A stretch of 64,000 bases of DNA from Blastocladiella emersonii ATCC 22665 (Eukaryota > Fungi > Blastocladiomycota): positions 434,001-498,000 of the forward strand of contig JANHCV010000006.1 in NCBI GenBank assembly GCA_025594325.1. Reading direction: 5' to 3'. Under the pieces are notes generated by a model that worked only from the letters and a program-made list of their open reading frames with translations, was not told the DNA's origin and made no database searches. Of this stretch, positions 34,508-63,695 are shown piece after piece. Made by a program: the position numbers and the translations under genes. How positions within the stretch are numbered: position 1 is the first letter of the stretch; every line of letters begins with the position of its first letter.

Positions 34508-34564
34508 GGGCCGCACTCGCGTGGGCGCCGTGAAAAGACCGCGCCGCCCGCGCGAGTGCGGCCC
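34508..34564 (+). repeat. 57-nt hairpin element, copy 2
   Basis: GGGCCGCACTCGCGTGGGCG / CCGTGAAAAGACCGCGC / CGCCCGCGCGAGTGCGGCCC: 19 Watson-Crick pairs plus 1 G-T. Confidence 0.9.
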
Positions 34565-40053: not shown

Positions 40054-40542
40054 GTATGGTCGGGTTCTACACGCCGCGCGTCGTGTGCGTTGGTCTCGGG
40101 GGTGTGCGACTCAGCGGGTGGGTCGCCCACTTACGCGAGGAGAAGCTGAGCAATGGTCGGCGAGAGAGAGGGGAGATCTCGCGCTTAGTCGAGGGCGAGT
40201 GCAGCCAGTCGGTGATTGCGATACATGGAAGTTGTTCCTGGCGTCAATTCGACGAGAGAAGGGGCGCGGCGGCGCCAAGTCTGCGTCGGCGGCGAAGTGG
40301 GCGGCGAAGGCGAAGGCGTTCGTGGCTGCTGCCGGGTGGCTGCGAGGCACCACGTGTGCGTGTCTCGCACCGCGCGCGCGCGTCGCTCTGCCTGGTCGCG
40401 TTCGCCGTGCCCCGGTTTCGTTCGCGTCCCCGCCCACTCGCACGGCGACCAGGAAGATGACGAGTCCAAAGTGTTTAGATTCAAGAGATACACTGCTTGC
40501 TTGCTCCCGCGGCGGCGCCCACACCGTGTGTCCGAACGCGGC

Positions 40543-41460
40543 TCACTGGCGCAGCTCCTCGTACGGGTACTCGACGCTCTGCCCCTTGCGGCGCCACAGC
40601 TTGAGCTTGGTGTTGCGGACGACGTGGCGGACCCAGATGTGCTCGCAGTACTTTGCCTTGTGGGCGCGGATGAAGGACGGGTCCCACAGCTCGCTCGCGA
40701 TGCCAATGTCCTTGCAGCACCGCATCAGCGCGTTGGACTTGCACCCCTCCATGGCCGTCGCCAGCTGCTTCTCGTCAAACACCTCCTGCTCGCCGCGCGC
40801 CTGCGAGATGAACCGCCCGTACGCGTACAGCGCGTACTCGCGGCTGATGACGCGACCCGCCATGCTGTGCGGGCCGCGCGGCGCCAGCGCCCAGCCGCCA
40901 GGCTTGAAGGCGCGGTTCAGGATCCGACGGTACTTGATCTCGGGCAGGTACAGCAGACCGTCTACAAGTCGGGGAGGATGAGCGGCTGTGACGCGGCATT
41001 GGTCAAGAAACCGGACAGCGACGACGGACCCGGCTTGATCTCAATGTCGGCCGGGTCGACCTCGGCGAGCAGGATCTCGACCACCGCGTCGGGGAACGCC
41101 TGTGTCGCGATGCCGGCAAACGCGTCCGCCTCCATGTGGAACGTGGACGACTCGGACGCGACCAGCGGCGACACGGTCTGCGACGCGAGCGACGGCATCG
41201 ACTTGACCGTCGACGGCTCCGCCGTGTTGTTGCCGTTGGCTCCCGCGGGCGCCTTCATCGGGCTCTCGAGCGGCGGGCGCGCAAACCGCAGCACCGGAGT
41301 CGTCTAACGAGGCAACACGGCGGTGTCAGCGGGGGGCTGTGTGTGCGAGGGTGGCGATGGGATCCAAGCTTACCGTCAGGGCGCGACGAGCGACGGACAC
41401 TGACGCCGATGACGACAGCGCGCGGAAGGCGCGCGATTGCATGGAGCCGATGAGATTCAT
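40543..41460 (-). CDS. MGM101: Mitochondrial genome maintenance protein Mgm101 (Rad52-type)
   Basis: DIEIKP/DGLLYLPEIKYRRILNRAFKPGGWALAPRG, EGCKSNALMRCCKDIGIASELWDP.FIR; mitochondrial presequence exon. Confidence 0.95.
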
Positions 41461-44400
41461 GGTTGTTGCGTCGGTGGGCAGAAGAAGAGAGCTGGGACCC
41501 GCTGTGTTGATCGCGTTGAGACTCACTCCCTTGCACGCGGCTGCTGCCTCGGGGCCGGCTTCAGGGAACCTTTCTTTGACGAGGGCATCGCTCGCCTCCC
41601 ATCCGTGGCTCTCTCACATCGCGTGCAGCCCGGAAGGCCGTGGGCCTCGCGTGTCCCTGAGAGTGGACCGCGCTGGAGGGCAACGTAGCGCCCCTCACGG
41701 CGGCACGTCCGCCCTCGCACGATCGAGTTGCAACAGGCTCTTGCAGACTACTTGCTGCCAAGACGACTCAGGTGAGTGAGATAAGACGGACTGAGCAAGC
41801 GATGGACGAGACGATGAGGTGGACCCTGAGAGGTGCGTGGCAACGGACCACCTGCGGTCACGCCACGCAGCCGCGCTTCGCGATCGCTGCCGTCACTTAA
41901 ATTTCGTCCAACGTTGCGCCAGCGTCTGATCCATACCCGGCGCTGACGATACAAGTTGTTATCTGACACCTCTTCTTCGAGCACACATTAGGCCGTGTGC
42001 GTTGACGACAGATTGTTCCGAGCCGTGTAATCTCGGTCCCACTTCTGGACCATGTTTTGCTACTTTGGCCTTCTACCCTCTTCTTCTTCAACACCTACTC
42101 CTCTCTGCCGCGGATGACGAAAGCGGTTCCCTTAACGAGAGGCAAGTGGAGTGCGGCGTGCGTGCTCCCGCGCCGTTCAGCATGTGAGAACATCACCGAA
42201 TCCGCATGCTTGCTCTCCCGCTCAACGCCCTCAGACAGCTTGATGAAGCGAATGAATTACCTGCTGCAACATGCTCGGCAGCGCATTATGCGTCCATTTG
42301 ACACGATCGCATTCCGACGTCGGTGTCCTGCGTCCGGGTGGTCGCGGCTTAGGAGGCGGGCTCCGACGGCGCCCCTCTCGATCAGCTTTCGCGGAAAAGT
42401 TCAGCTTGCACATGCTCTCGCGATTGCTTCGCTTCTTGCGTCCGACTTGCGCTTGAGAAGCGTGAGCAGCGCGCACTCGTCCCGCACTTGGAGTGCTTGA
42501 GGCTGGGATGCAGTACATGTGGTCGCGCAGCTTGACTTGGTTGGGTCCACCGGTATACTTACGGCCTCGGCCTCGGCCACGGCCTCGTCCGCGCTCACCC
42601 CACCCTGCGTCAACACCACCGCGGGACTGGCGAGACCCAAGTCTCAGCGGGTCGTGGACGTCGTCTTCCCGTCTCGAATTGTGTGATCGTGATCGTGAGG
42701 CCGCCGTATCACTTCCGCTCCAAACATACTCGCACCAGTTTTGCTTCACAGGCAAGTGTCCCGTCGAGTGGGAGGCCCGACGCACGCGCGTGAGACACGC
42801 TGCGAGACGCGACGCAAAATAGCGTGACGCGCGCGTGCGCCTTGATCCGAAACACGACGCGAGCTGGGACCTCGAGCTCTCGCTGCCTTCAACTCTGCAT
42901 CTCATGTATCCACCGCATGTAAAACTACCAGCAATGTAACTCAGGGCTTGCCGCCGTGATGTGGGCTTTCAAGTCGAAGGCGTTCTTCAGCAGCCACCTC
43001 GCCTCGACCCGACAGGGCTCAGGGAACCTTAGCCACGTGGTCGCGTTCACATGCTCTTCCCCACCAGCACATAATTTGAACCTACCGCGTGCTTTATTGC
43101 TATCAGTTTATCAAAGAAGAGTTGTACGTCACACGTGGTCGTCGAGTAGCAGGCGGCTCGCTTGTGGTCCAGGTCGCCGTCAATGGCGAGGCGGCGCGCA
43201 CTAGCACGGCGCGACACGGTTCGAAAACTGCTCCGATCCTGCAGACCGTGTTGCCGTAAACACCGAGGTCGCCGGGCTCGCGGTCCAAGTCTTCTTCACC
43301 CACTTGTGTCGCGCCGGGCCCGCTTACCTGTGCGTGCCGCGGCTCAAGGACATGATCGCTACCTCGGCGGTGACCCACGGGACGTACTTCCCGCGTTCCC
43401 GGCTTACCTCGCGATCGCGTCGCCAAACTGTCCTGCATCATGACGGTCCCGACGTTGCATCACGCCCGCTTCGCTGTCAAGCGAGCGCGCTTTGTCGTTT
43501 CTGAACGTAGCCGCGCCGAGAGCGTTCTTGGTCTGTTCGTGGCGGCGACGCTGATGATGCGACGCTCTTGCTCCTCTCTTCGATTATTCTTTTGGAAGGG
43601 GCTCGTTGCACACTTACACGCGGTTCACGGGGGTCCTGCTGGGCCTGGTGCTGGCCGAGCTTGGGTCGCTCGCACGGACGTGCCTCGCTCACCTGCTCGA
43701 GCTCGAGTCCGACAACCGCAAAGAAGACATGCCGCTGATCCACCGTGCCGCGCGATACATTTAAGACGGTGCCACGTGGCAGTACTCGCGCGTGCTCGGC
43801 GTCCCGCGGGAGCTCTTTGCGGCCTGCTGTTCTGATCCCAGGACGGCGAAGCTTGCGCTCCTCTCACTCTTCGCCGCGCCTCGACTCACTCGCAGCCCCG
43901 GCGCGCGGCCCGTCCCGAAACTGTAAACACAACCAGCAAGTTTCCCGCGATCGCTGCGACCCAGAATCGCGTCGTCGACTGCGCCGTCACGGTGGCCCAC
44001 GCCCCGCTCGCACGCGCAGGACAAGATCAACGCAGGTCGCACTCGCGAGGCTCACTACTTTATGCAAGTTCACTCTCGTCAAGCTCGCGTCGACCGGCTA
44101 AAGGAGCTGTTCAACCCGGTCCGCGCGGTCCTGCTGCGACGAGGATGAAGCGCGTTGACAGTCCCTTCTCGCTCTGTTCCAGGCAGCTGTACGCGGACGC
44201 CGCCACGCTTGACCGATATTTGGTAATCGTAGAGAAAATTTTCTTTCTGCTGATTGGTGAACACCCTAGATTGATATTGCTGCTCGGTCGCGAGGCGGCT
44301 AATGACGCGTTGCGCCACTTCACACGTCGGAGTGCTTCTGCCCTTCGCTCAAGTGCTACGCCCGCCATCATTTCGTGCCCATCGGTTAGTTTAAACTGCC

Positions 44401-45843
44401 TCAATGGCGCGGAGAAGTGAAGAAATGACACACGTTCATGCTGACGTTGGCGATGACCGTGAGAACTTTGCTCGGGTCAGTGGCATTTGCTATCGGGGCC
44501 CGAGTGGAGCGGACAATACAGGGTTACCATGGGTGCGGGTCCGTGGATACTGAGGGAGTTTCGGGAGCTCAGTTCGAATCCTTCTCGTTCGAGGTTGAAT
44601 CTCAGATCAGCCATGAGTCAACCCTTAGCCGACCTTCTCTTCGAACCGTCCACTACCATCCACGCCCCATTCCCTAATCCTTTCCTTTTGCTTAATGATT
44701 GGATTTTTGATAAATAAATCGGCACAAAGATGCACAAAGGCAGGCCGCGGCACGCTCGTTTCGTGTTGGCCGCGGGAGACGCGACGCACGGGAGACAAGT
44801 CGCGATGAACTGCGACTCTATCAGGCGCGGCGGGCGAGAGAGATTTCACGATTCAGTCCAGGATGCTGGCAGCCAAAGAATTGTCTCCTCGCGTATTCCA
44901 CTCGCCTGGAATCAGGGGCCGTTAAAGCAACGTGATCATGAACGCGATCATGATAACGCGGGAGACGCACGTGCCACTGATCAGGTCGCACGAGGATTTC
45001 AGTCCTTGGCTCTGTCCTGGCAAAGACTCAGGAGCGTTTTGTCGTACAAAATAGCTGTGGTATCGGGGATGACGCGCCGGTAACTAAATGACCGGCGATC
45101 ATGGTGCGAGTGAGACAAGGTGCGAGACACGACGCGAAAACGCGTGACGCGTTCATGCGCCTTGATCTGAAATGCGACGCGCGGTGCCGCTCCCGCTTTC
45201 GCCCACTCCGTCGCCCGTCTTCGCACGCTCTCTCATCGTCAGCGTCGCACCTCATGTATTAATCGCTAGTTACTAGCCGCAACGTAGCATGTTACCGACC
45301 GTCGTGAGCTTGTTCGCTTGAGGAGCCCTCGTCCGCCGGAAGTTGCTTGTCATGATCGGCCTCGAGTCTATCCTCGCCGTCGGCCTACTCGAGTCGTCTG
45401 CTGTTTCTTATGCTAGATTTTGAGATGCATTTCCTCTGGTCCACTCGTTTGCTCGCTCGCGATTGATCGCGCGACTTGGGCGTGCTCCAATTCAAATAAT
45501 GTCGTGTAGCTGTTTGGGGATTGCTCGCCCGCTTCGTCGCCATGTCCGTGCGTGGGGTCGAGATTCACATATAGCCTGTCCGTTCCCTCTTGATGGTATC
45601 TCGTAAGCCATTCAGTCGCACAAGGCCGCTACGCACGCGTGAAGCGCCCTCGTTCAAAACCACCTCTTCCGTCGAGTCAATCAACCTTGCGACCAAAATC
45701 AAAGGCGTCGGTTGACATGGCGGCGGAGCACCAGAAGCCTCAGGTCGGGATAGCGAGCCCCCTTGCTGTCATGTCGGCCTTGCTCAATAACGATTCGCGA
45801 AAGTACAATAAACTAGGATCTTACATTAAAACGAGCACGAGCA

Positions 45844-46482
45844 CTACACCTTGGCGAGCACACGGCGGTCGAGGACGGCGTAGCGCAGGATGAAGACGAG
45901 GATGCCGCCGACCAACATGGTGAGGCCGGCGAAGGCGATCGCGGGCGCAAACTGCGCGCTCGGCAGGGCGCCACCCTTGGACGCGCTGATCAGCGCCGTG
46001 GCCACGGGCGTGCCGAGCGCGTACCCCAGAATGTTGCTCGTCGAGATGAGGCCCATGGTCGAGGCCAGCGTGGCGACACCAAACAGCTGCGCGACGCAGC
46101 TCGGCGTGATGCTGAGGTAGCCGCCGCTCATGAACCCGTACAGGCCCGCGAACACGACAAGCCACGCCTGCGAGTCGCCGCCAAACAGCCACGTGGTGAG
46201 GATCGACACGCCCGACCCGACGAGCGAGAGCCCGAGGGATGTGACGTTGCCCAGTCGGTCCGCGAGGTAGCCCATGGACACGCGGCCGACGATCGAGGTC
46301 GCGTTGAAGACGGTGAGCAGCGCGCTGCCAAGCGCGGCCGAGTGCGGCGTGGCCTGCGCGACGTAGGTCGGGAGCAGGAACGGCGGGACGAGGAACCCGA
46401 ACGTGTTGAAGGCGAGGCCAAAGTAGAGGAGCAGGAACCGAGGCTCGCGGAACAGCGCGAGGTTGAGTTTCGGCATCGAATG

Positions 46483-46516
<34 letters not shown>

Positions 46517-47283
46517 GGTTGCTGCGCACCGGCGGGGGTTCTGGTCACTTTCGTGGTCACACTACTAGTGATGCGAGGCCGAGCGAGCACGGCGCCAAGC
46601 GCGAACAGCACAAAGTTGATGGCCGCGAGGACCCGCAGCGTCCACGCGAAGCCGATTGACGGCATGATGGCCTGGATCATGTTGACGTAGATGAGGCCGC
46701 CAACGCCCGACCCAGCGACCGCGATCCCCACGGCCGTCGAGCGGCGCTCAACCCACCACTGCGCAATGAGCGCGAGCCCCGTGTTGATGCCGAGCGAGCC
46801 GGCCGCGCCGTACAGCAGGCCCTGCGTCAACATCAGGTGCCACACCTCGGTCGCGAAGCTCGCGAGGACGAGCGACGCACCCGCGATCACGGCGCCGAGG
46901 GCCAGCGCGTTGCGGAACCCCCACGACTCGGCGAGGCGGCCCGTGAAGGGTCCCGCGGCGGCGAGCGCCATGGGCATGAAGGCGCCGATCAGCGAGATGG
47001 ACGAGAGCGAGGCCGAGGGGAAGTCGACCGTCTTGTACTGCGCGGTGAAGAGGCCAAAACTGTTGAGGTTTGAGAAGACGGCAAAGTAGGTGAGGAAGCT
47101 CACGGCAACCTGGCACCACGCCGCGAAGCCGCCGTCGAGGCGGTCGGCCGTCAATGCTGCTGCGTCGTTGATGTTGTTGCCGGCTTCGAGAGATGATGAG
47201 GGGGCGTCGAGATCTAGGACCGAGTCGGGTTTTCTGGGTGGTTCAGCGGCGGCGGCGGCGGCGGCGTTGTAAGTCACGGTCAT
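45844..47283 (-). CDS. MFS transporter, monocarboxylate (MCT/Mch-like) family, copy 1
   Basis: About 12 hydrophobic segments; DGGFAAWCQV..SF, GRLAESWG, QGLLYG, QWWVERRSTAVGIAVAGSGVGG, GRVSMGYLADRLG; poly-Q central loop; intronless. Confidence 0.92.
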
Positions 47284-48202
47284 GGTCCTTGATGGTGATG
47301 ATGATGATGATGATGATGATGCAGGGTGTTGCGGGCGGGGCGGGGGAGAGCGAGCATCAGAGCAAGGAACAGCCGCGGGTTTTGTTCATTCCAGCAAGCG
47401 GGCGCGCCATCCACATGTGTTTGCTGCTCAGCGGCCAGGCGTCAAAGTGTTGCATGGAGTGTGCGTGTTGTAGGAAGAGCAAACGAGCGTCAGCGCGGAG
47501 CGTAGAGGTCGGATACGCGGGGCCAACTCGGCGGATCCCTGTCGCGGCCCGTGTAGCCGCTGCGCCACCCTGTGTTCGCTCGCGTTGAATCTCCCGCGCG
47601 GGCAGCAAAGAGCCGCAGGTGGGGCAACCGATGCAGCGAGATCCGTCGGCTTCTCGTGTGCGTGGGGCGTGGCAGTCGGTGCGCAAACAACAGGGCGGGT
47701 CCGGGTCGGTGATGCGCCGCTGATCCGCGCCGCTCGCTCGCGAGCAGGCCGAATCCCTGCAGCAGGATCACGTGCGAGGTGGCGCAGCCGCGCGAGACGC
47801 GAGACGTCCCTGCGTCCGTCCGGGTGCGGGACGCACCAGTTGGCCGCATCACCGCACCACAAGGCCCACGGAAACGTGCGCCAGAGCTCGCGGCCCACCG
47901 CGTGGGAACAGCGTTGCCCCACGCGACCCAAGCGTGTGCTTGGGCAACGCGACGCGGTGCGCCCGAGTCGCGCCGTGTCCCCCGTTCCACAGCCGAGTGA
48001 AGCGGACCGCAGAGGCGATGCAGCGGCCCGCTGCCGAATCCACTGGGCGACAGCGGTACGGGCGGAAGCGGCGCACCGCGCGCCGGTGCGGTCCGTCGCG
48101 CGAGCAGCAGCGGGGGAGCGGCGTGCGGTCAAGGCCCGGGTGATCCGAAACGCGCTAATTTTGGCGACGCGTCGCTCACGTCGCCGTGCCGTTCGCCGCC
48201 GG

Positions 48203-48208
48203 TATAAA
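48203..48208 (+). promoter_or_regulatory. TATA box of the QS-repeat gene (mirror copy at 53885-53890 on the minus strand)
   Basis: TATAAA in otherwise GC-rich DNA, 118 nt upstream of the ATG at 48321, followed by a C/A-rich leader. Confidence 0.6.
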
Positions 48209-48320
48209 GACTCGCACGCCCCCGCCGTCCTCTCAAGTTTGCTCGACACCAGCAATCGCAACGAAGCACATCGCATCGCACACCTGCTCAACCACCACCA
48301 ACCAACCAACCACCTTCAAG

Positions 48321-49040
48321 ATGACCCACTGCGCCCCGATCCACGTCCCCGCCGTCCAGACCCAGTCGCAGTCGCAGTCGCAGGCCCAGTGGGGCGGCAA
48401 CGGCGCCCAGTCGCAGTCGCAGTCGCAGTCGCAGGCCCAGTGGGGCGGCAACGGCGCCCAGTCGCAATCGCAGTCGCAGTCGCAGTCGCAGTGGGGCAAC
48501 CACGGCGATGCCGCGCAGCAGCAGTCGCAGTCGCAGTTCCAGTGGTCGGGCAACGGCCACCACTCGGTCGACCAGGCCCAGTCGCAGTCGCAGTGGAGCA
48601 ACGGCCACGGTGACGCCGCCCAGTCGCAGTCGCAGTCGCAGTTCCAGGGCAACTGGGGCAACCACGGCGACGCCGCGCAGCAGCAGTCGCAGTCGCAGTT
48701 CCAGGGCAACTGGGGCAACCACCACTCGGTTGACCAGGCCCAGTCGCAGTCGCAGACCCAGTGGGGCACCGGCCACGGCGCTCAGTCCCAGTCGCAGTCC
48801 CAGTCGCAGTCGCAGTGGTCCAACGGCCACGGCGACGCCTTCCAGTCGCAGTCGCAGTCGCAGTCGCAGTTCCAGGGCCACCACTCGGCCGACGGCTTTG
48901 TCGGCGGCAACCCGGCCACCTGGGGTCCCTCGGGCGACTGCGGCAACGGCGGCGACTTCCACATTCTCCCGATCAACAACCACGGCGACTGCGGCAGCGA
49001 CGTCGTGACCATCCTGCCCATCAACCACGGCTGCTGCTAA
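48321..49040 (+). CDS. 239-aa Gln/Ser alternating-repeat protein, copy 1 (function unknown)
   Basis: ATG in TTCAAGATG context downstream of a TATA box; ten (QS)n-W/G strand-plus-Gly/Asn/His turn units; Cys-containing C-terminus ending GCC*. Confidence 0.8.
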   Translation: MTHCAPIHVPAVQTQSQSQSQAQWGGNGAQSQSQSQSQAQWGGNGAQSQSQSQSQSQWGNHGDAAQQQSQSQFQWSGNGHHSVDQAQSQSQWSNGHGDAAQSQSQSQFQGNWGNHGDAAQQQSQSQFQGNWGNHHSVDQAQSQSQTQWGTGHGAQSQSQSQSQSQWSNGHGDAFQSQSQSQSQFQGHHSADGFVGGNPATWGPSGDCGNGGDFHILPINNHGDCGSDVVTILPINHGCC

Positions 49041-50318
49041 GCGAGCGGACGCCTACACTAGATGTTTGTCAATATCCCCTACTCCATCATCCTTATGTAA
49101 ATGTTTTCTTGCTCAAACAACCTTGCTTCTCGTGCAATCGGCACTTGCTCGTACATGGAGAGGAGTAGCCGCGAGTGAACGAGCTGGACAGGATCGAGCC
49201 TGGACCATTGTTTCATTGCCTCCGCTTCTCGCTTCCTTGTCGTTTGTTAATCGATCGATGCCTCTGATGCTTGAAATTGAACATGAATCGATGGGCGTGC
49301 CGCTTCTTCCTGAGAGTGCGACAGATTCGCAGCGCCAAGAACCAAGCTGTGGCGCTACGCGGTCAGCTGAGCTTCGACGACCGCGATGCGCCACGACTCT
49401 GCGTCGAACGCTCATGAGGTGTTGAGCTTGTCAAATAGACGCGCAAGCACTGTTTTTCCAGCTTGCGCGTCGCGAGAGCAGCGTACGACTTGCTCGCTCC
49501 AGATCGTCGTGTGGCAGGTCGCCGTGTGGCAGGGAGAGCTGTGCTGCTTCACGAGTTTGTTTGTTTGCGGGGCTTTCAGGTACCGACGTTAACCCAAACT
49601 ACGTCGGAACACGGATTCGCGCGGGCAGCGACACGTCGTACAGCGCCGCATGATCCTCGGCGTGATGTGGCGCCGCACACTCGAACGATGATCACCAACG
49701 CGACCGTCGCTGGCCGTCTTCAACATCCTTGCCCTCACTAAACAGCCGCTTGGATCACGTCACTCGCCATGTAGCTTGCTGCTCACTTGCTGAACTATGT
49801 CGCTGCACCTGATACGATCAGTCGCCCAGCAGCCGATGCCCAACCGCATGCAGCGCTGCTCTTCACGGCTCCGAGCTCGAGACCTGCAAGACTCCCTGGT
49901 CTATGTCGGCGGCTGGCAAGAACGCAAGTGTGGGCTATTGGTGCACCCGTAGATTTGCGGATGCTCGCTGCACGGACCCACATTAGTGCTCGTCGCTTGC
50001 GAGTATTGGTTGGCAAAGGGCACTGCCTCCGGTGGGGGTACCACTATGGCGGGGTCACATTCGACAGTGTCGCCCCAGACTTTAGCCCAGGAGAATTAAT
50101 GCAACAAATCACCCAGAAAATCAACTCGCTGCATCTTCGCGCAAAGTGATATCAAGGCGATCAAGTAGGTCTTCGATGATGTTCGAGTTGCTTCACCCGC
50201 GGTTGCACCAGTCAACAGCGGGTGGAATACCTGTCCTAAGCTACAGTCTTTCGACCCGGTCCCGCACGCCAACTCGTCGTTACACGCAATTTCTCGACCG
50301 TTCCGCATCGCGCTGTTT

Positions 50319-50375
50319 GGGCCGCACCCGCGCGAGCGCCGTGAAAAGGCCGCGCCGCCCGCGCGGGTGTGGCCC
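50319..50375 (+). repeat. 57-nt hairpin element, copy 3 (in palindrome spacer)
   Basis: 18 Watson-Crick pairs, 1 G-T, 1 mismatch; loop CCGTGAAAAGGCCGCGC. Confidence 0.9.
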
Positions 50376-51525
50376 TCAAGTACCTTACACGTCGCAGCGC
50401 AGTGCGAAGCGGTTGATCGAGGATTAAGTTCGAAACGCAGGCCCGGATCAAGGTCGCGCGACGTGTCGAACGCTGGTCGTTGCAAGAGGGCTGTCTGGAA
50501 TACATGAAGCGTTGTAATCCCAGATGTGGTTTGAAGCGAAGCAGTGGAGAGCTTGAGTCGCGATTGACAACGCTGCGCACCGTCCAGGATCTGCTCGCGC
50601 ATCGCGTGAGACGCAGGAGTGGACGAGGTGTTGGCCGATTGTGATCGCAGCTCCGTCACGGCCGCCGGCTTACGATTCGCCGGACATGTGTCGCATTCTT
50701 GTGCAGCCAACGCGCTACAACTCATGCTATAGGCCGAATTGGCTATCGTGGGTCTCGCTGGTTGACTGTCACTGCAGTCCGTGACGTGCTCGCGGCGAGG
50801 TGACAGCGCGAGCAACGCGTTTCTCATCTCGGCGTGCCGACCAGCGGCGTGGCCAGCCGCTTGTCGCAGAGCAGTCTCGCCCTCGCCCTCGCTCCCGCAT
50901 CCTCGCATATCCTACACTTCCATGAAGCGACACTTGATGCAACCTAGCGATTAGGCTCAGAAGAAGACTACCTTGCGACGCAAACCGGGCTGCGAGCGAA
51001 ACGGTGCTGTTGGAACGCATCACGCGGCAAACCTGAGCTTATGCTCGCGCTTGTGCGAGCCTGTGCAACCGTGCATCGCTTATGGCGAGAACGCCTCGTC
51101 CCCCGGCGCCGAGCGGCGCTGAGTTCGTCAAGGCGGCGGTTACCGCACCACGGGTTTGTCGTTATTGTCGCACTCCGTGAGTGTAGTTGAACATTTGCGG
51201 ACCAGTCACCCTAACCCACGCGCTCAATTTATCACTCGGCGAGCTAGAGAAAGTTCTTTCGGACAATTATTCAGACTTGAACGGCGGCCAACTACTCACC
51301 ATTCGGGCCTGGTCCAAGCGTGTGGCCTCTCGGGTTGTCTCGCGCCATGATCGGGGGCTGCTCCAAATACCAACCGGACATGGCTACTCGAAAGCTGGCT
51401 GCGAATTCACTTGGATTCACTAGCTTTCCCGCGACGAGTTTCACGCGCTGCGCCACAGGCCGTTGCTCATGTCCACCACGATTGGTGTTGTTTGAATCTC
51501 GCCGCTGTCCCTCATCGCGCTGCAA

Positions 51526-51582
51526 GGGCCACGTCCGCGCGAGCGCCGTGAAAAGAGCGCGTCGCCCGCGCGGGTGTGGTCC
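51526..51582 (+). repeat. 57-nt hairpin element, copy 4 (in palindrome spacer)
   Basis: 16 Watson-Crick pairs, 3 G-T, 1 mismatch; loop CCGTGAAAAGAGCGCGT. Confidence 0.85.
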
Positions 51583-53052
51583 TCAATACTTCTACGTTTG
51601 CGGCGCGGAGTGGGACAGCCGCGTGGGACTCGGACGCACTCGTCGCTGGCCATGGCCACGGCGACAGCAAGCGAGCGAGTGCTGATTGATTGCCGCGAAT
51701 CTGGCCACCACGTATGAGTGCATTGCCCATTTGCGTCCTCAATTCCACAGCAAGTAACTTCCAACCGTGGTCGTAGCTTACACGACCGCGACCATCATCG
51801 CGATCGCATCAGGTTTCCGCGCAGGATGCGCTTCTCGTGAAGTCGCGCTGCGGCCACATATCATTCGTTGGATCACGCACGCGCACAAGCTCACGAGCGG
51901 TCCAGTTGAGCAAAAGCTAGTAGCTATACATAACAAAACTCTCGCTGATCTTATATCAAAGTCTCTGCCGACGCATGTGCCGCCGGCTCACCCTGCTGCT
52001 GCTGCCCCTGTCCTTGCACCCCTCCCGCGGCCGACAGCCAGCCCAAACGCGGGCAATCCGAGCATCGCGTCGAGCCCCGCGAACGGCCGCTGCTGCGCGT
52101 CCTGCTGCTGCTGGAAGTACGCCGCGTTCGGCGGCGCGACCATGGCTGCGGCGGCCGCGGCGGCCGTGACGGCCGGGTGCAGGAGATTCGCCCACCCTTA
52201 TGCCGCAGGTAGATAGTCAGAATCGCCGTGATGCACTCACTGTTCGAGAGTGGCCACGTACAGCTCCTGTGGCGGGCCCTCGTCGCGTAGCCGCCGCGAC
52301 GGCAGGAACGGCCGGTACAGCTCGAGGACCGTCGAGTGGTACATGATGTTGAGGTATGCGACCTGCCCTGCAGCGGCGTTGAGAGGCGGTAGCGCGGGTG
52401 ATCATCGTTCGAGTGTGCGGCGCCACATCACGCCGAGGATCATGCGGCGCTGTACGACGTGTCGCTGCCCGCGCGAATCCGTGTTCCGACGTAGTTTGGG
52501 TTAACGTCGGTACCTGAAAGCCCCGCAAACAAACAAACTCGTGAAGCAGCACAGCTCTCCCTGCCACACGGCGACCTGCCACACGACGATCTGGAGCGAG
52601 CAAGTCGTACGCTGCTCTCGCGACGCGCAAGCTGGAAAAACAGTGCTTGCGCGTCTATTTGACAAGCTCAACACCTCATGAGCGTTCGACGCAGAGTCGT
52701 GGCGCATCGCGGTCGTCGAAGCTCAGCTGACCGCGTAGCGCCACAGCTTGGTTCTTGGCGCTGCGAATCTGTCGCACTCTCAGGAAGAAGCGGCACGCCC
52801 ATCGATTCATGTTCAATTTCAAGCATCAGAGGCATCGATCGATTAACAAACGACAAGGAAGCGAGAAGCGGAGGCAATGAAACAATGGTCCAGGCTCGAT
52901 CCTGTCCAGCTCGTTCACTCGCGGCTACTCCTCTCCATGTACGAGCAAGTGCCGATTGCACGAGAAGCAAGGTTGTTTGAGCAAGAAAACATTTACATAA
53001 GGATGATGGAGTAGGGGATATTGACAAACATCTAGTGTAGGCGTCCGCTCGC

Positions 53053-53772
53053 TTAGCAGCAGCCGTGGTTGATGGGCAGGATGGTCACGACGTCGCTGCC
53101 GCAGTCGCCGTGGTTGTTGATCGGGAGAATGTGGAAGTCGCCGCCGTTGCCGCAGTCGCCCGAGGGACCCCAGGTGGCCGGGTTGCCGCCGACAAAGCCG
53201 TCGGCCGAGTGGTGGCCCTGGAACTGCGACTGCGACTGCGACTGCGACTGGAAGGCGTCGCCGTGGCCGTTGGACCACTGCGACTGCGACTGGGACTGCG
53301 ACTGGGACTGAGCGCCGTGGCCGGTGCCCCACTGGGTCTGCGACTGCGACTGGGCCTGGTCAACCGAGTGGTGGTTGCCCCAGTTGCCCTGGAACTGCGA
53401 CTGCGACTGCTGCTGCGCGGCGTCGCCGTGGTTGCCCCAGTTGCCCTGGAACTGCGACTGCGACTGCGACTGGGCGGCGTCACCGTGGCCGTTGCTCCAC
53501 TGCGACTGCGACTGGGCCTGGTCGACCGAGTGGTGGCCGTTGCCCGACCACTGGAACTGCGACTGCGACTGCTGCTGCGCGGCATCGCCGTGGTTGCCCC
53601 ACTGCGACTGCGACTGCGACTGCGATTGCGACTGGGCGCCGTTGCCGCCCCACTGGGCCTGCGACTGCGACTGCGACTGCGACTGGGCGCCGTTGCCGCC
53701 CCACTGGGCCTGCGACTGCGACTGCGACTGGGTCTGGACGGCGGGGACGTGGATCGGGGCGCAGTGGGTCAT
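53053..53772 (-). CDS. 239-aa Gln/Ser alternating-repeat protein, copy 2
   Basis: Identical translation to 48321-49040. Confidence 0.8.
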   Translation of the reverse strand: MTHCAPIHVPAVQTQSQSQSQAQWGGNGAQSQSQSQSQAQWGGNGAQSQSQSQSQSQWGNHGDAAQQQSQSQFQWSGNGHHSVDQAQSQSQWSNGHGDAAQSQSQSQFQGNWGNHGDAAQQQSQSQFQGNWGNHHSVDQAQSQSQTQWGTGHGAQSQSQSQSQSQWSNGHGDAFQSQSQSQSQFQGHHSADGFVGGNPATWGPSGDCGNGGDFHILPINNHGDCGSDVVTILPINHGCC

Positions 53773-54809
53773 CTTGAAGGTGGTTGGTTGGTTGGTGGTG
53801 GTTGAGCAGGTGTGCGATGCGATGTGCTTCGTTGCGATTGCTGGTGTCGAGCAAACTTGAGAGGACGGCGGGGGCGTGCGAGTCTTTATACCGGCGGCGA
53901 ACGGCACGGCGACGTGAGCGACGCGTCGCCAAAATTAGCGCGTTTCGGATCACCCGGGCCTTGACCGCACGCCGCTCCCCCGCTGCTGCTCGCGCGACGG
54001 ACCGCACCGGCGCGCGGTGCGCCGCTTCCGCCCGTACCGCTGTCGCCCAGTGGATTCGGCAGCGGGCCGCTGCATCGCCTCTGCGGTCCGCTTCACTCGG
54101 CTGTGGAACGGGGGACACGGCGCGACTCGGGCGCACCGCGTCGCGTTGCCCAAGCACACGCTTGGGTCGCGTGGGGCAACGCTGTTCCCACGCGGTGGGC
54201 CGCGAGCTCTGGCGCACGTTTCCGTGGGCCTTGTGGTGCGGTGATGCGGCCAACTGGTGCGTCCCGCACCCGGACGGACGCAGGGACGTCTCGCGTCTCG
54301 CGCGGCTGCGCCACCTCGCACGTGATCCTGCTGCAGGGATTCGGCCTGCTCGCGAGCGAGCGGCGCGGATCAGCGGCGCATCACCGACCCGGACCCGCCC
54401 TGTTGTTTGCGCACCGACTGCCACGCCCCACGCACACGAGAAGCCGACGGATCTCGCTGCATCGGTTGCCCCACCTGCGGCTCTTTGCTGCCCGCGCGGG
54501 AGATTCAACGCGAGCGAACACAGGGTGGCGCAGCGGCTACACGGGCCGCGACAGGGATCCGCCGAGTTGGCCCCGCGTATCCGACCTCTACGCTCCGCGC
54601 TGACGCTCGTTTGCTCTTCCTACAACACGCACACTCCATGCAACACTTTGACGCCTGGCCGCTGAGCAGCAAACACATGTGGATGGCGCGCCCGCTTGCT
54701 GGAATGAACAAAACCCGCGGCTGTTCCTTGCTCTGATGCTCGCTCTCCCCCGCCCCGCCCGCAACACCCTGCATCATCATCATCATCATCATCATCACCA
54801 TCAAGGACC

Positions 54810-55576
54810 ATGACCGTGACTTACAACGCCGCCGCCGCCGCCGCCGCTGAACCACCCAGAAAACCCGACTCGGTCCTAGATCTCGACGCCCCCTCATCAT
54901 CTCTCGAAGCCGGCAACAACATCAACGACGCAGCAGCATTGACGGCCGACCGCCTCGACGGCGGCTTCGCGGCGTGGTGCCAGGTTGCCGTGAGCTTCCT
55001 CACCTACTTTGCCGTCTTCTCAAACCTCAACAGTTTTGGCCTCTTCACCGCGCAGTACAAGACGGTCGACTTCCCCTCGGCCTCGCTCTCGTCCATCTCG
55101 CTGATCGGCGCCTTCATGCCCATGGCGCTCGCCGCCGCGGGACCCTTCACGGGCCGCCTCGCCGAGTCGTGGGGGTTCCGCAACGCGCTGGCCCTCGGCG
55201 CCGTGATCGCGGGTGCGTCGCTCGTCCTCGCGAGCTTCGCGACCGAGGTGTGGCACCTGATGTTGACGCAGGGCCTGCTGTACGGCGCGGCCGGCTCGCT
55301 CGGCATCAACACGGGGCTCGCGCTCATTGCGCAGTGGTGGGTTGAGCGCCGCTCGACGGCCGTGGGGATCGCGGTCGCTGGGTCGGGCGTTGGCGGCCTC
55401 ATCTACGTCAACATGATCCAGGCCATCATGCCGTCAATCGGCTTCGCGTGGACGCTGCGGGTCCTCGCGGCCATCAACTTTGTGCTGTTCGCGCTTGGCG
55501 CCGTGCTCGCTCGGCCTCGCATCACTAGTAGTGTGACCACGAAAGTGACCAGAACCCCCGCCGGTGCGCAGCAACC

Positions 55577-55610
<34 letters not shown>

Positions 55611-56249
55611 CATTCGATGCCGAAACTCAACCTCGCGCTGTTCCGCGAGCCTCGGTTCCTGCTCCTCTACTTTGGCCTCGCCTTCAACACGTTCGGGTTC
55701 CTCGTCCCGCCGTTCCTGCTCCCGACCTACGTCGCGCAGGCCACGCCGCACTCGGCCGCGCTTGGCAGCGCGCTGCTCACCGTCTTCAACGCGACCTCGA
55801 TCGTCGGCCGCGTGTCCATGGGCTACCTCGCGGACCGACTGGGCAACGTCACATCCCTCGGGCTCTCGCTCGTCGGGTCGGGCGTGTCGATCCTCACCAC
55901 GTGGCTGTTTGGCGGCGACTCGCAGGCGTGGCTTGTCGTGTTCGCGGGCCTGTACGGGTTCATGAGCGGCGGCTACCTCAGCATCACGCCGAGCTGCGTC
56001 GCGCAGCTGTTTGGTGTCGCCACGCTGGCCTCGACCATGGGCCTCATCTCGACGAGCAACATTCTGGGGTACGCGCTCGGCACGCCCGTGGCCACGGCGC
56101 TGATCAGCGCGTCCAAGGGTGGCGCCCTGCCGAGCGCGCAGTTTGCGCCCGCGATCGCCTTCGCCGGCCTCACCATGTTGGTCGGCGGCATCCTCGTCTT
56201 CATCCTGCGCTACGCCGTCCTCGACCGCCGTGTGCTCGCCAAGGTGTAG
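54810..56249 (+). CDS. MFS transporter, monocarboxylate (MCT/Mch-like) family, copy 2
   Basis: Identical translation to 45844-47283. Confidence 0.92.
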
Positions 56250-56799
56250 TGCTCGTGCTCGTTTTAATGTAAGATCCTAGTTTATTGTACTTTCGCGAAT
56301 CGTTATTGAGCAAGGCCGACATGACAGCAAGGGGGCTCGCTATCCCGACCTGAGGCTTCTGGTGCTCCGCCGCCATGTCAACCGACGCCTTTGATTTTGG
56401 TCGCAAGGTTGATTGACTCGACGGAAGAGGTGGTTTTGAACGAGGGCGCTTCACGCGTGCGTAGCGGCCTTGTGCGACTGAATGGCTTACGAGATACCAT
56501 CAAGAGGGAACGGACAGGCTATATGTGAATCTCGACCCCACGCACGGACATGGCGACGAAGCGGGCGAGCAATCCCCAAACAGCTACACGACATTATTTG
56601 AATTGGAGCACGCCCAAGTCGCGCGATCAATCGCGAGCGAGCAAACGAGTGGACCAGAGGAAATGCATCTCAAAATCTAGCATAAGAAACAGCAGACGAC
56701 TCGAGTAGGCCGACGGCGAGGATAGACTCGAGGCCGATCATGACAAGCAACTTCCGGCGGACGAGGGCTCCTCAAGCGAACAAGCTCACGACGGTCGGT

Positions 56800-57595
56800 A
56801 ACATGCTACGTTGCGGCTAGTAACTAGCGATTAATACATGAGGTGCGACGCTGACGATGAGAGAGCGTGCGAAGACGGGCGACGGAGTGGGCGAAAGCGG
56901 GAGCGGCACCGCGCGTCGCATTTCAGATCAAGGCGCATGAACGCGTCACGCGTTTTCGCGTCGTGTCTCGCACCTTGTCTCACTCGCACCATGATCGCCG
57001 GTCATTTAGTTACCGGCGCGTCATCCCCGATACCACAGCTATTTTGTACGACAAAACGCTCCTGAGTCTTTGCCAGGACAGAGCCAAGGACTGAAATCCT
57101 CGTGCGACCTGATCAGTGGCACGTGCGTCTCCCGCGTTATCATGATCGCGTTCATGATCACGTTGCTTTAACGGCCCCTGATTCCAGGCGAGTGGAATAC
57201 GCGAGGAGACAATTCTTTGGCTGCCAGCATCCTGGACTGAATCGTGAAATCTCTCTCGCCCGCCGCGCCTGATAGAGTCGCAGTTCATCGCGACTTGTCT
57301 CCCGTGCGTCGCGTCTCCCGCGGCCAACACGAAACGAGCGTGCCGCGGCCTGCCTTTGTGCATCTTTGTGCCGATTTATTTATCAAAAATCCAATCATTA
57401 AGCAAAAGGAAAGGATTAGGGAATGGGGCGTGGATGGTAGTGGACGGTTCGAAGAGAAGGTCGGCTAAGGGTTGACTCATGGCTGATCTGAGATTCAACC
57501 TCGAACGAGAAGGATTCGAACTGAGCTCCCGAAACTCCCTCAGTATCCACGGACCCGCACCCATGGTAACCCTGTATTGTCCGCTCCACTCGGGC
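56800..57595 (+). repeat. Diverged repeat unit (blocks A and B), related to 59150-59585; mirror copy in the left arm at about 44500-45290
   Basis: Block A, e.g. CGCGTCGCATTTCAGATCAAGGCGCA, and block B, e.g. ACTCATGGCTGATCTGAGATTCAACCTCGAACGAGAAGG, recur with roughly 80% identity (estimated by eye) about 2.0-2.3 kb downstream. Confidence 0.75.
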
Positions 57596-59149
57596 CCCGA
57601 TAGCAAATGCCACTGACCCGAGCAAAGTTCTCACGGTCATCGCCAACGTCAGCATGAACGTGTGTCATTTCTTCACTTCTCCGCGCCATTGAGGCAGTTT
57701 AAACTAACCGATGGGCACGAAATGATGGCGGGCGTAGCACTTGAGCGAAGGGCAGAAGCACTCCGACGTGTGAAGTGGCGCAACGCGTCATTAGCCGCCT
57801 CGCGACCGAGCAGCAATATCAATCTAGGGTGTTCACCAATCAGCAGAAAGAAAATTTTCTCTACGATTACCAAATATCGGTCAAGCGTGGCGGCGTCCGC
57901 GTACAGCTGCCTGGAACAGAGCGAGAAGGGACTGTCAACGCGCTTCATCCTCGTCGCAGCAGGACCGCGCGGACCGGGTTGAACAGCTCCTTTAGCCGGT
58001 CGACGCGAGCTTGACGAGAGTGAACTTGCATAAAGTAGTGAGCCTCGCGAGTGCGACCTGCGTTGATCTTGTCCTGCGCGTGCGAGCGGGGCGTGGGCCA
58101 CCGTGACGGCGCAGTCGACGACGCGATTCTGGGTCGCAGCGATCGCGGGAAACTTGCTGGTTGTGTTTACAGTTTCGGGACGGGCCGCGCGCCGGGGCTG
58201 CGAGTGAGTCGAGGCGCGGCGAAGAGTGAGAGGAGCGCAAGCTTCGCCGTCCTGGGATCAGAACAGCAGGCCGCAAAGAGCTCCCGCGGGACGCCGAGCA
58301 CGCGCGAGTACTGCCACGTGGCACCGTCTTAAATGTATCGCGCGGCACGGTGGATCAGCGGCATGTCTTCTTTGCGGTTGTCGGACTCGAGCTCGAGCAG
58401 GTGAGCGAGGCACGTCCGTGCGAGCGACCCAAGCTCGGCCAGCACCAGGCCCAGCAGGACCCCCGTGAACCGCGTGTAAGTGTGCAACGAGCCCCTTCCA
58501 AAAGAATAATCGAAGAGAGGAGCAAGAGCGTCGCATCATCAGCGTCGCCGCCACGAACAGACCAAGAACGCTCTCGGCGCGGCTACGTTCAGAAACGACA
58601 AAGCGCGCTCGCTTGACAGCGAAGCGGGCGTGATGCAACGTCGGGACCGTCATGATGCAGGACAGTTTGGCGACGCGATCGCGAGGTAAGCCGGGAACGC
58701 GGGAAGTACGTCCCGTGGGTCACCGCCGAGGTAGCGATCATGTCCTTGAGCCGCGGCACGCACAGGTAAGCGGGCCCGGCGCGACACAAGTGGGTGAAGA
58801 AGACTTGGACCGCGAGCCCGGCGACCTCGGTGTTTACGGCAACACGGTCTGCAGGATCGGAGCAGTTTTCGAACCGTGTCGCGCCGTGCTAGTGCGCGCC
58901 GCCTCGCCATTGACGGCGACCTGGACCACAAGCGAGCCGCCTGCTACTCGACGACCACGTGTGACGTACAACTCTTCTTTGATAAACTGATAGCAATAAA
59001 GCACGCGGTAGGTTCAAATTATGTGCTGGTGGGGAAGAGCATGTGAACGCGACCACGTGGCTAAGGTTCCCTGAGCCCTGTCGGGTCGAGGCGAGGTGGC
59101 TGCTGAAGAACGCCTTCGACTTGAAAGCCCACATCACGGCGGCAAGCCC

Positions 59150-59585
59150 TGAGTTACATTGCTGGTAGTTTTACATGCGGTGGATACATGAGATGCAGAG
59201 TTGAAGGCAGCGAGAGCTCGAGGTCCCAGCTCGCGTCGTGTTTCGGATCAAGGCGCACGCGCGCGTCACGCTATTTTGCGTCGCGTCTCGCAGCGTGTCT
59301 CACGCGCGTGCGTCGGGCCTCCCACTCGACGGGACCGCCGTCTCGGGCCACCGTTGTGCGCACTTGCTCAATGCCCAGCTATCCTCCAACAATTTAAAAC
59401 TAAAAAAGTCAAGGAAAAGGATTAGAGAGCGGGACGCGAGTGAAAGTGAACAGCCCAAAGAGAGGGTTCGCGAGGGGTACTCATGGCTGATCTGCGATTC
59501 AACGTCGAACGAGAAGGCTTCTGAGCACCCGGAGCTCCCCCGAGCACGCGCGGCCCCGAACCCGCTGTGCCCCCGTATTGTCCAG
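59150..59585 (+). repeat. Second, shorter copy of the diverged A+B repeat unit, spanning the palindrome's outer boundary
   Basis: CGCGTCGTGTTTCGGATCAAGGCGCA (block A, inside the arm) and ACTCATGGCTGATCTGCGATTCAACGTCGAACGAGAAGG (block B, outside the arm). Confidence 0.75.
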
Positions 59586-60700: not shown

Positions 60701-60823
60701 CAGGGGACCTGCACTCGAGGACCGGTCACGTGCCGGCTCCACACGATTGCTTTGGCAGGCGCTCTGCCGCACACGCGCCTGCAGCAGCCGTGCAGCAGCC
60801 GTGGCCGCGGCCACCGTCGGCGA
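60701..60823 (+). repeat. Left copy of a second inverted repeat (about 123 bp)
   Basis: CAGGGGACCTGCACTCGAGGACCGGTCACGTGCC...GGCCACCGTCGGCGA matches the reverse complement of 63861-63985 with only a few substitutions and a 2-nt indel. Confidence 0.9.
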
Positions 60824-60974: not shown

Positions 60975-63695
60975 ATGGTCGCCGTCCTTGCAGGCGAGGG
61001 CGCGGCTACGCTTCCCGTCACCGTGCTCGACTCGAGCTGGACCCACCTGCCGCTCGTCGTCCATTCCACGGCACCGGTGCTGACCTCGCTCGCCGAGTTC
61101 TGTCGCACCTTCACCATGGCCAGCCTGTCGGTCCTCGCCGCCGTCCTGCTCGTTGACATCGACGATTGCAGCCGTGCGTTCGAGCCGCACTCGCTGCTTC
61201 GTGCGTTCGAGCCGCACTCGCTGCTTCGCTGCTGTGGCTTCTCGGGGTGCTTGCCGTCCCGCCGCAACCCTCACGCACGCGCTCCGCAAACATCTCATCC
61301 TCGTCGCCATGCGCCACCCGCCGCTGCGGCGCGTGCTCGAGGAGCTCGCGGGCGCCCAGGTCACCAAGCTCCTCATCGGGTCCATCGGATACGTGCCGCC
61401 CTGGGTCCTGCTCGAGCACCCCAACCCTTGGGACGACCCGATCCGCGCGCCGTCGCAGTCGATCCCGGGCACCGCCGCCAAGGAGTGCACCTCGCTCAAC
61501 CTCGCCGTCGAGCTGTGCCTGTACCGCCACACCGAGGGCCTCCTGTTGGTGCAGCGTGTGTCGAGCAAGTGCTTCACGGTCATTGACCTTTCGCTCGTCG
61601 CTCATGATCGTTGCGCACCTCATCGACGCCCTGCAACACGACTGGTAGGGTCCCTCGCGCCCGTGTCCGGTCGACGCCCTCGCGACGCTCGACTGGCTCG
61701 TGCTCCGCGCCGGCAGCGAGGTCGCTGTCCTCGCGTCGCAGGTCGTCTCGCTCATCGCCAACGCCGCGGCCGAGTTCCCCGCCGAGGCCGTGCAGTGCTG
61801 TACCAGCCTCGCGCGCGTCGCCGACGACAAGACGCTCGCCCGGTTCTGGCTGTCGATCCTCCTCTCCGCTGCGCGCACGCCCGCCGTCCTCGAGGTCGGC
61901 CCTCCCACCATGGCGCTCCTCGACCTCCTCTTCTCGCGCGCCACGCCCGAGGTCCTCAAGGACGCGCCCGACCTGCCCGCGCACCCGGTCCTCGCGCCGT
62001 TCCAGGCGCGCATCGATGCGGCAAAACCGGCGACACCGTCTTTGCACGACCGCCTCGCCCGCGTGTGTGCGCGCATCGTGTCGCTCGACCTCGTCGTCGC
62101 CGAGGCCTCGCTCGACGAAGCCCTTGCGCTACTCACGCAGATCCACGCGTCGTCGGCCGACGCCGTGGTCCGCAACCTGCACGTCGTGGTCGACGCCCTC
62201 GTCAACGTCGCCGAGTACCACCCGACGCCCGCCGTACGCGCGACCGTGTGTCGTGGGCAGCTCGGGGCCGTCGATTTCGGCGATTTTTTGGGCGCCGCGG
62301 CCGCCGCGATGCGCGGCGAGGCCACCGTCTCCGACAAGGACGGCGGGCTCAAGACGGGAGTCGTCGCGCACCAGGAGATCCCCGTGCTGTGCGCCGAGGT
62401 GCTCAAGTCGTGTCTGATCCCCTTCCTCCGGTCCGGCGCGTTCCATTTCGCGCAGACCATCGTCGCGCACGCGATCCAGCGGCTGCTCAAGCTGCACCAC
62501 AAGACGTGCCTCGACGCGCTCAACGATTTTGACCGGTCGACGGTGCGCCACCTGCAGGACAGCAAGTACCGCGTCGATGAGCCCATGCTCGTGGCCGAGG
62601 CCGACGCAGCCGCCGCCATGTTCCAGCCCGGCGCCGTGTCCTTCTCCGCGTAGGCGTGCTGGTTCTGCCTCCGCCTCGCCGCCCGCTGCGCCGACTCGGC
62701 GCTCGTCGCCGTCTTCCGCGCCCTGCACCCGCTGCTCGCGCAGACCCAGCACCACGAGGTCGCCACCGTGCGCTCCCCTTCATCGTCCTACACCTGTGCC
62801 TTGTCGTGAGCCCCGCGCTCGACTCGGTCGTGTCCGAGTTCATTCACGCCCTGCAGCACGTGGCCGGCGGCGACCTTGCGATGCAGTCGTTCGCGCTCGC
62901 CATCTTCGACGCCAGGAGCGCGCCAAGTTCGCCGAAAAGCGCAGCCGCCGCGCCACGCCGAGTGCATTGGGCGCGCCGAGCCCGCGCCGTACGACCTCGA
63001 GGCGTCGGTCCACCCTGCCGCCCGCGCCGGTCGACCTTGGACCTCGGACAGCTCTTCCTCGACGTGTTCCTCGACGTGTTCCTCGACGTGTACCGCCGCC
63101 TGCGCAACGAGGGCGTCGACTAGGCGCTCGGCGCGTCGCACCTGTTCCAGCAGCAGCAGCAGGTGGGCGGCGGCGGTGCCGACACGGTCCAGGACCCGCG
63201 ACACCTCGCGCTGCAGCACGAGGTCCGCGTGCTCGCCGTCCACCACGCGGCGTCCGTTCACGGCAGCAGCGGGAGCGTTCCGACACCCCCGACGCGGCTC
63301 AGCGCGTACCAGGCGTGGCGTGAGCTCGGGTCCTTTGACCTCCTCGCCGAGCAGCGCACGGGCGCCATCACGGCACACCGAGACGCACCCCGAGTGGAGC
63401 GCCGACCTCGCGCCGACCCGGTTACCCCCACGCCGATCCAGTCACCGCCGCCCCGAGCGTCGGGTACGCTCCTCAGCGACCCCGCCCACGCGCGCAAGCT
63501 CGAGCTCGACGCGCGCGCCCGCGCACGGTCCAGGCCGACGTGTTCCGCGAGCAAAGGCTCAGCTGCGCCTGTGCGACCATCGTCGACCGCCACTGGTTCG
63601 CTGACCTCCTCTTCACGTTCCATGACACGGCGCTGCTCGAGACCCGCACCGCCGAGCCCACCAACGTTGAGGCCATCGTCAACGCGCGCTACTAG
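60975..63695 (+). pseudogene. Disrupted internal fragment of an ATR/Mec1-like PIKK gene (HEAT/pre-FAT region, no kinase domain)
   Basis: Motifs resembling ATR in the expected order: AQTIVAHAIQRLLK, RHLQDSKY, SFSA(*)ACWFCLRL...VFRALHPLL...ALPFIVLHL, VYRRLRNEGVD. In-frame TAG at 62651-62653 where Trp is expected, plus several frameshifts. Family call is by recollection only. Confidence 0.6.

Follow-up and report, generated by a model that had tools for sequence, protein, structure and literature searches.

Arms, spacer and gene content of the palindrome

The window analysed here is a 64,000-nt stretch of the genome of the zoosporic fungus Blastocladiella emersonii ATCC 22665 (assembly GCA_025594325.1), whose first letter is position 434001 of contig JANHCV010000006.1 (2,021,495 bp), and it contains a gene-bearing palindrome formed by two inverted arms and a single-copy spacer (Table 1). 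Base-by-base comparison revealed that the arms are perfectly complementary over 6,939 bp each, with 0 mismatches, and that the spacer between them measures 2,700 bp. The dominant inverted pair returned by the repeat search (42758-49711 / 52382-59335) has arms of 6,954 nt, which extend 15 nt past the perfect arms and include 5 mismatches in this extension. Public annotation places a divergent gene pair in each arm, a 479-aa major facilitator (MFS) gene oriented outward and a 239-aa QS-repeat gene oriented toward the spacer. Both MFS copies were assigned to this contig by exact look-up. From the outside inward each arm consists of a 3.1-kb non-coding outer part, the MFS gene, the promoter region of about 1 kb from which the two genes are divergently transcribed, the QS gene and 656 bp of downstream sequence, such that both QS genes stop 656 bp short of the spacer.

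The MFS protein matches the Pfam family MFS_1 (E 1.6e-30); among solved relatives, the best matches are the monocarboxylate transporters MCT10, MCT2, MCT8 and MCT1 (E 3e-18 to 9e-15). Its nearest relatives are all found in B. emersonii ATCC 22665, where the subfamily is repeatedly duplicated, being represented by P0001 (twice), P0002, P0003 (twice, as an inverted pair), P0004 and P0006. The longer open reading frames (ORFs) that overlap the QS-repeat gene display no Pfam match, and QS paralogues of 257, 168 and 153 aa are present elsewhere in the same genome. A search with the whole QS protein returned two distant paralogues only and missed both the query itself and the 257-aa paralogue, being insensitive for a low-complexity protein; the search with its C-terminal region, subject to the same insensitivity, gave zero matches. 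Gene calls are absent from the outer 3.1 kb of the arm and from the spacer, and the ORFs of both regions all lack Pfam matches. Scanning the window for tRNAs and against Rfam gave no hit. The spacer carries a dispersed hairpin repeat, with a predicted DNA fold of -29.7 kcal/mol (z -2.7), and related copies are located at 51507-51586, also in the spacer, and at 33223-33339 and 34473-34612.

The boundaries of the arms are sharp. Local alignments past the inner and outer boundaries score like shuffled sequence, with the exception of the 15 nt directly adjoining the inner boundary, where 10 of 15 positions match in inverted orientation; matches of at least 10/15 occur at an empirical frequency of 0.0016 among random position pairs in the spacer. 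The two flanks, aligned locally with the right one taken as its complement, proved mutually unrelated. Sequence comparison found differing flank ends and no target-site duplication, and inspection by eye of the four boundaries did not reveal the hairpin-plus-CTAG terminus of a Helitron 3' end. The locus thus combines long inverted identical copies with a unique spacer and two different unique flanks, which is the composition of a chromosomal palindrome. A preliminary description of the window, made from its sequence, had given exactly these arm and spacer sizes and coordinates; its sharp boundaries are borne out apart from the short inner match, and the gene pair that it proposed for each arm agrees with the public annotation. 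Its statement that this is not a simple terminal inverted repeat (TIR) transposon also holds, in view of the lack of a target-site duplication and of any transposase or recombinase domain in the ORFs of arm and spacer.

Table 1. Coordinates of the palindrome and associated features in the window. Depths refer to X1, the deepest of four public sequencing runs; L003 is a paralogous locus on the same contig.
Feature	Position	Strand	Remarks
Left arm	42758-49696	+	inner junction 49696/49697 ancestral, outer junction 42757/42758 novel
MFS transporter, 479 aa, monocarboxylate-transporter-like	45844-47283	-	mirror copy 54810-56249 (+); annotated, single exon
Arm only (read test)	46500-48043		2 copies predicted; X1 depth 264.1 and 259.8
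Ectopic gene-conversion tract, 3.27 kb	48014-51283		100% identical to L003 except QS-array unit differences and one single-nucleotide polymorphism (50659)
QS-repeat protein, 239 aa	48321-49040	+	annotated; mirror copy 53053-53772 (-); both copies converge on the spacer
Arm inner end (read test)	49041-49696		3 copies predicted (two arms and L003); X1 depth 412.4
Spacer-left (read test)	49667-51283		2 copies predicted (spacer and L003); X1 depth 272.5
Spacer, single-copy, 2,700 bp	49697-52396		no called gene; full-length homology to the L003 intergenic region between the QS and transcription factor genes
Imperfect inverted match, 10/15 nt	49697-49711 with 52382-52396		directly past the arms; candidate microhomology for the novel inner junction
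Dispersed hairpin repeat, 57 nt, CCGTGAAAAG loop	50319-50375		from self-blast and spacer self-complement; GC-rich stem of about 20 bp
Spacer-right (read test)	51254-52426		1 copy predicted; X1 depth 131.8 to 139.8
Decayed Zn-cluster/Fungal_trans transcription factor gene fragment	52196-52378	-	blastn to L003 4026-3844, 81%; adjoins a 1,150-nt deletion
Right arm	52397-59335	-	outer junction 59335/59336 ancestral, inner junction 52396/52397 novel
Older diverged repeat, copy 2	59253-59583	+	unbroken, in register across 59335/59336

Read support for the arms and inner junctions

The genome paper reports an assembly built by the La Jolla Assembler (LJA) from PacBio HiFi reads (about 190x coverage, mean length 10.5 kb); it was purged of duplicates and then polished with 65-bp Illumina reads. 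Reads of this mean length are long enough to contain one 6.9-kb arm plus unique anchors on both sides. The paper makes no mention of palindromes, inverted duplications or segmental duplications. Support in the reads was evaluated in four public runs of one sample (X1 to X4), used as Logan contigs built from 31-mers, over positions 46500-52450, an interval that takes in the inner 3.2 kb of the left arm, the whole spacer and the first 54 nt of the right arm. The ends and depths of the contigs were compared with a 31-mer copy-number model built from the window and from L003, a paralogous locus of the same contig at a distance of 290 kb.

The X1 contigs all end where the model changes copy number (47014/46987, 48043, 49696, 49667, 51283/51254 and 52426) and their depth is about 135 for each predicted copy. 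Depth is conserved at the inner end of the arm, where 412.4 equals the sum of the two outgoing branches, 272.5 and 139.8. One of these branches, the contig that starts at 49667, begins 30 nt inside the left arm, and the other, which covers 52115-52426, enters the right arm by 30 nt at a depth of 139.8, the single-copy level. These contig ends and the split in depth thus place both inner junctions at full single-copy depth and the arms at two copies for each spacer. A genome with a single arm would give depths of about 135 and about 270 where 262 and 412 are found. In addition, the two arms are free of variant bubbles in X1 over 46500-48043 and 49041-49696, and the copy ratio of the palindrome in the sequenced sample fits a fixed structure. 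The preliminary description had named a fold-back artefact as the outcome that would overturn it; arm-only depth of 260-264 against 132-140 in the unique spacer, together with single-copy inner junctions, speaks for a real palindrome.

A diploid reading of the depth steps 135/270/412 was considered and rejected, as 31-mer sharing with L003 explains the steps fully; a single-copy depth of 270 would also exceed the amount of data given in the paper if X1 is, as it appears, the HiFi run. Depth ratios in X2 and X3 were not used for copy number, these runs being mutually inconsistent and derived from an old short-read platform applied to DNA of 60-74% GC. The 31-mers of the QS array (48291-49086) reach depths of 1,700-4,600 in X1, compared with about 135 per copy, indicating that the hexamer-type QS-coding repeat is common to many other places in the genome. 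X4 displays a loose end at 50342 that resembles a loxP-type circularisation linker, as well as many single-base homopolymer insertions, and is therefore probably an old mate-pair library rather than plain shotgun sequence.

A third copy, ectopic conversion and the polarity of the junctions

L003 contains an MFS paralogue (P0002, 74% identical) beside a divergent 257-aa QS paralogue. Its colinearity with the left arm and spacer extends from the stop codon of the MFS gene to position 52378. The relationship is uneven along this length. In a profile per 100 nt, the MFS coding sequence is 77-93% identical to L003, and the promoter region between the MFS and QS genes is unalignable between the two loci. 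A tract of 3.27 kb then follows that spans the boundary between arm and spacer and is virtually identical to L003 (Table 1), such that 48014-49696 is the same in all three copies, the two arms and L003, apart from unit differences in the QS array. Beyond the tract, over 51284-52378, identity drops to 85-96% and the window lacks 1,150 nt by deletion. Such an identical tract between diverged neighbours is a signature of recent ectopic gene conversion, and the agreement of the X1 depth levels with the 31-mer copy model indicates that the tract is genuinely shared with L003. Non-reciprocal transfer affecting arm sequence is therefore observed, but with the third copy and not strictly from arm to arm. 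Both hairpin-repeat copies of the spacer are also present at the corresponding places in L003. At position 50659 the window has C and L003 another base; the X1 and X4 contigs read T, X2 reads C and the X3 contigs break there, a behaviour that fits a paralogue-specific variant.

The end of the old duplicate is marked by a decayed fragment of a transcription factor gene, and tblastn with the transcription factor reading frames of L003 matches 52254-52366. Homology to L003 ends at 52378, 18 nt from the novel junction, a proximity that points to a break within the old duplicate and to loss of what lay beyond it.

Two comparisons assign a polarity to the four junctions. L003 is colinear through 49696/49697, including the diverged right part of the spacer, so the junction of the left arm with the spacer is ancestral and that at 52396/52397 is novel. 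Similarly, an older diverged repeat provides the polarity of the outer junctions. Its first copy occupies about 57250-57582 within the arm (mirror 44511-44843) and its second runs across the end of the right arm, as established by blastn matches of 74-83% and by three-way and local alignments. The left flank has no counterpart of this repeat (local alignment score 18.5), which stops at 42758. As the repeat continues past 59335/59336 and is cut at 42758, the right outer junction is ancestral and that at 42757/42758 is novel. One ancestral junction is thus retained by each arm, and the spacer is consequently inverted relative to the ancestral order, which, read in the direction of the arm, would have been the complement of the right flank, the arm and the spacer. 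One ancestral junction per duplicate is the configuration that the staggered-break model predicts, with the paralogue and the old repeat acting here as stand-ins for an outgroup.

A second example of inverted MFS genes is offered by P0003, a paralogue 67% identical to the arm protein, whose two copies form an inverted pair about 68 kb apart on JANHCV010000012.1 (approximately 904.9-910.0 and 978.3-983.5 kb). In this pair (L004:9475-14834 / L005:9475-14834) a 5,154-bp identical core is embedded in 5,360 bp at 99.7% identity, with flanks at 78-83%, as gene conversion within an old inverted duplication would be expected to produce.

Two other features of the window were recorded outside the palindrome. 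The annotated 680-aa gene at 38660-41460 (-) encodes both Mgm101p and GDT1 domains and gives the impression of two adjacent genes that the gene predictor has joined. A 125-nt inverted repeat of 96% identity (60701-60823 / 63861-63985) brackets an annotated 602-aa gene at 61309-63695.

Origin of the palindrome and relation to known systems

The locus is probably a genuine inverted segmental duplication, a chromosomal palindrome of B. emersonii, rather than a mobile element, a switch or an artefact, and the history put forward for it combines observed and inferred steps. An old partial duplicate of the L003 locus, comprising the 3' part of the transcription factor gene, the intergenic sequence, the QS gene and the MFS gene, would have been placed beside unrelated non-coding sequence. 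One rearrangement would then have made the second, inverted copy of 6,939 bp, for which two routes may be envisaged. One starts with insertion of an inverted copy between the left flank and the distal end of the spacer, through template switching or ectopic gap repair, the inner joint so created bearing the 10/15 microhomology; a single crossover between the arms would later have flipped the spacer. In the other, a single 9.6-kb inversion occurred with one break staggered by 6.9 kb. One-step birth and insertion followed by crossover yield identical sequence; the 10/15 match found at the new joint is slightly in favour of template switching or a microhomology-guided switch. The identity of the arms would subsequently reflect their youth, arm-to-arm gene conversion or both. 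That the arms are young, converted or both is shown by the data.

The preliminary description had regarded the arms as recent or homogenised, which fits, since conversion acts on this sequence, in the tract shared with L003, and on the related P0003 pair, although for conversion between the arms themselves the diverged extension is lacking. It had also proposed that recombination between the arms would flip the spacer. The spacer is indeed inverted relative to the ancestral order, as judged indirectly, but inversion at birth would also explain this. Long perfect palindromes are unstable, and the preliminary description had raised this for the present locus; as a general rule it stands, but it applies weakly here because 2.7 kb of spacer separate the arms. 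The sole consequence that follows from the structure is the presence of two identical gene pairs with a shared promoter, which are presumably co-expressed. The suggested dosage-doubling module amounts to no more than the trivial outcome of having two identical copies, the very long double-stranded RNA (dsRNA) imagined from read-through across the spacer is pure conjecture, and there is no indication of a regulatory function of the palindrome itself.

Several points weigh against this interpretation. Read support is limited to 46500-52450, an interval that reaches neither outer junction nor the outermost 3.7 kb of the arms, and the four runs come from one sample, probably that of the assembly, and hence give no independent test of it. 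In X2 and X3, the older short-read runs, contigs pass straight through 49696 and 52299-52396 is left bare, so that the right inner junction appears in X1 only. Depth in these two runs falls steadily from 51500 to 52300, and the GC content at 52000-52199 is 74%; the gap is likely due to low depth together with this composition, with the alternative branch perhaps clipped, and the pattern as a whole could reflect low coverage, GC bias or a real difference between DNA preparations. Phasing over the length of a 6.9-kb arm, or of the 3.3-kb tract common to spacer, arm and L003, is beyond contigs of 31-mers, and the orientation of the spacer therefore rests on the published assembly. One unit of depth at 48014-49040 is left unexplained by the copy model and corresponds to an extra L003-type QS copy. 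In X1 the QS region (48014-49042) has a depth of about 549 against about 410 predicted for 3 copies, and the L003-type contig one of 280.5. This additional copy diverges directly after the stop codon (49041/49042), and exact look-ups of both QS proteins gave known places only. The polarity argument leans on a paralogue and an old repeat, not on a true outgroup. Finally, with no diverged extension of the arms, arm-to-arm conversion is not demonstrated and youth alone would suffice.

Other explanations account for parts of the evidence. An assembly or library fold-back, in which one arm is real and the second stems from chimeric reads or from the assembler, would give exactly the zero differences seen between the arms; the contigs were aggressively purged in the assembly, and the right inner junction is not shown by X2 and X3. 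It is nevertheless very improbable, being largely refuted by the doubled depth of arm-only 31-mers in X1, and the full single-copy depth of the right inner junction, with its exact contribution to the branch, argues in the same direction, as does a 2.7-kb unique spacer between two different flanks, which is unlike a missed-adapter product. Even less credible is a mobile element with long terminal inverted repeats, of foldback or composite type, or a programmed invertible switch driven by a recombinase. The inverted-repeat architecture and a spacer whose orientation changed at least once relative to the ancestral order would agree with such a system, but the flank ends differ without target-site duplication, the non-genic ORFs are Pfam-negative and encode no transposase or recombinase domain, and the arms consist of host genes with colinear paralogues, present in the reads at exactly two copies. 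As to a switch, the spacer has neither gene nor domain, and neither inner junction splits a promoter or a gene, the QS genes ending well before the spacer.

An adaptive amplification, selected in nature or in culture for a doubled MCT-like transporter and/or QS protein, appears unlikely. The MFS subfamily has been duplicated repeatedly in this genome, and here whole genes were duplicated along with their shared promoter, but almost half of each arm, 3.1 kb, is non-coding. Less remote, if still doubtful, is an old palindrome that is not young at all and whose arms, as in the sex chromosomes of primates, are kept identical purely by frequent arm-to-arm conversion. The tract shared with L003 demonstrates that ectopic conversion acts on the sequence, and the P0003 pair displays an identical core inside old diverged flanks. 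In contrast, identity at the present locus ends abruptly at both boundaries with no homology beyond them, where long-term maintenance by conversion may leave an identical core inside diverged extensions, and nothing demands an old age.

The structure belongs to a known kind, together with sex-chromosome ampliconic palindromes, the long inverted repeats of Caenorhabditis elegans and the duplications at inversion breakpoints. Plastid genomes, the yeast 2-micron plasmid and herpesviruses carry identical inverted repeats whose recombination can reorient the unique segment between them. In these flip-flop systems both isomers are found in one population and some possess a dedicated recombinase, whereas here one isomer is assembled, no recombinase was found in the ORFs of arm and spacer, and a single historical change of orientation is deduced. 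The ampliconic palindromes of mammalian sex chromosomes, such as P1-P8 of the human Y and those of the X, are kept by arm-to-arm gene conversion. In a comparison that draws in part on PMC11168930, they resemble the present locus in their inverted arms of kilobase scale, near-total identity, unique spacer and whole genes, with conversion also active here; the B. emersonii arms are 10 to 100 times shorter and lie on a fungal chromosome without known sex linkage. Moreover, long-term upkeep is a property of the mammalian palindromes, in contrast to the single genome and the absence of diverged flanks here. Drosophila inversions flanked by inverted duplications led to the staggered-break model (Ranz et al. 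2007, PMC1885836), and the two cases share ancestrally unique, gene-bearing breakpoint sequence that is duplicated in inverted orientation at both ends, with one ancestral junction for each copy. In the D. yakuba set no aligned duplication exceeds about 1.9 kb and the duplicates are about 88% identical (PMC1885836), in contrast to the identical 6.9-kb copies found here, between which the inverted unique part measures just 2.7 kb and where the 10/15 microhomology suggests template switching or annealing over blunt end joining. C. elegans maintains long near-perfect inverted repeats in which genes are paired convergently or divergently (Zhao et al. 2007, PMC1803023), and whose upkeep was shown against two other species, in contrast to the single genome considered here. 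To these systems the present locus adds that the polarity of birth, ectopic conversion and spacer inversion are all readable from sequence.

For users of the assembly in gene counts, expression mapping or knock-outs, the arm genes are to be treated as two indistinguishable copies. The locus serves as a worked example: a rearrangement is polarised here by an older third copy together with an old repeat, and the two reveal ectopic conversion over 290 kb and an inverted spacer. A wider and tentative idea is that gene-bearing palindromes occur genome-wide in this fungus, homogenised by arm-to-arm and ectopic conversion and with their middles flipped by crossover. Were it true, they would constitute an autosomal, whole-genome counterpart of sex-chromosome ampliconic palindromes in an early-diverging fungus, and the present locus would be the case in which birth, conversion with a third copy and inversion can be followed in one sequence. 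If other palindromes of the genome share these features, Blastocladiella would become a tractable microbial system for the origin and persistence of palindromes.

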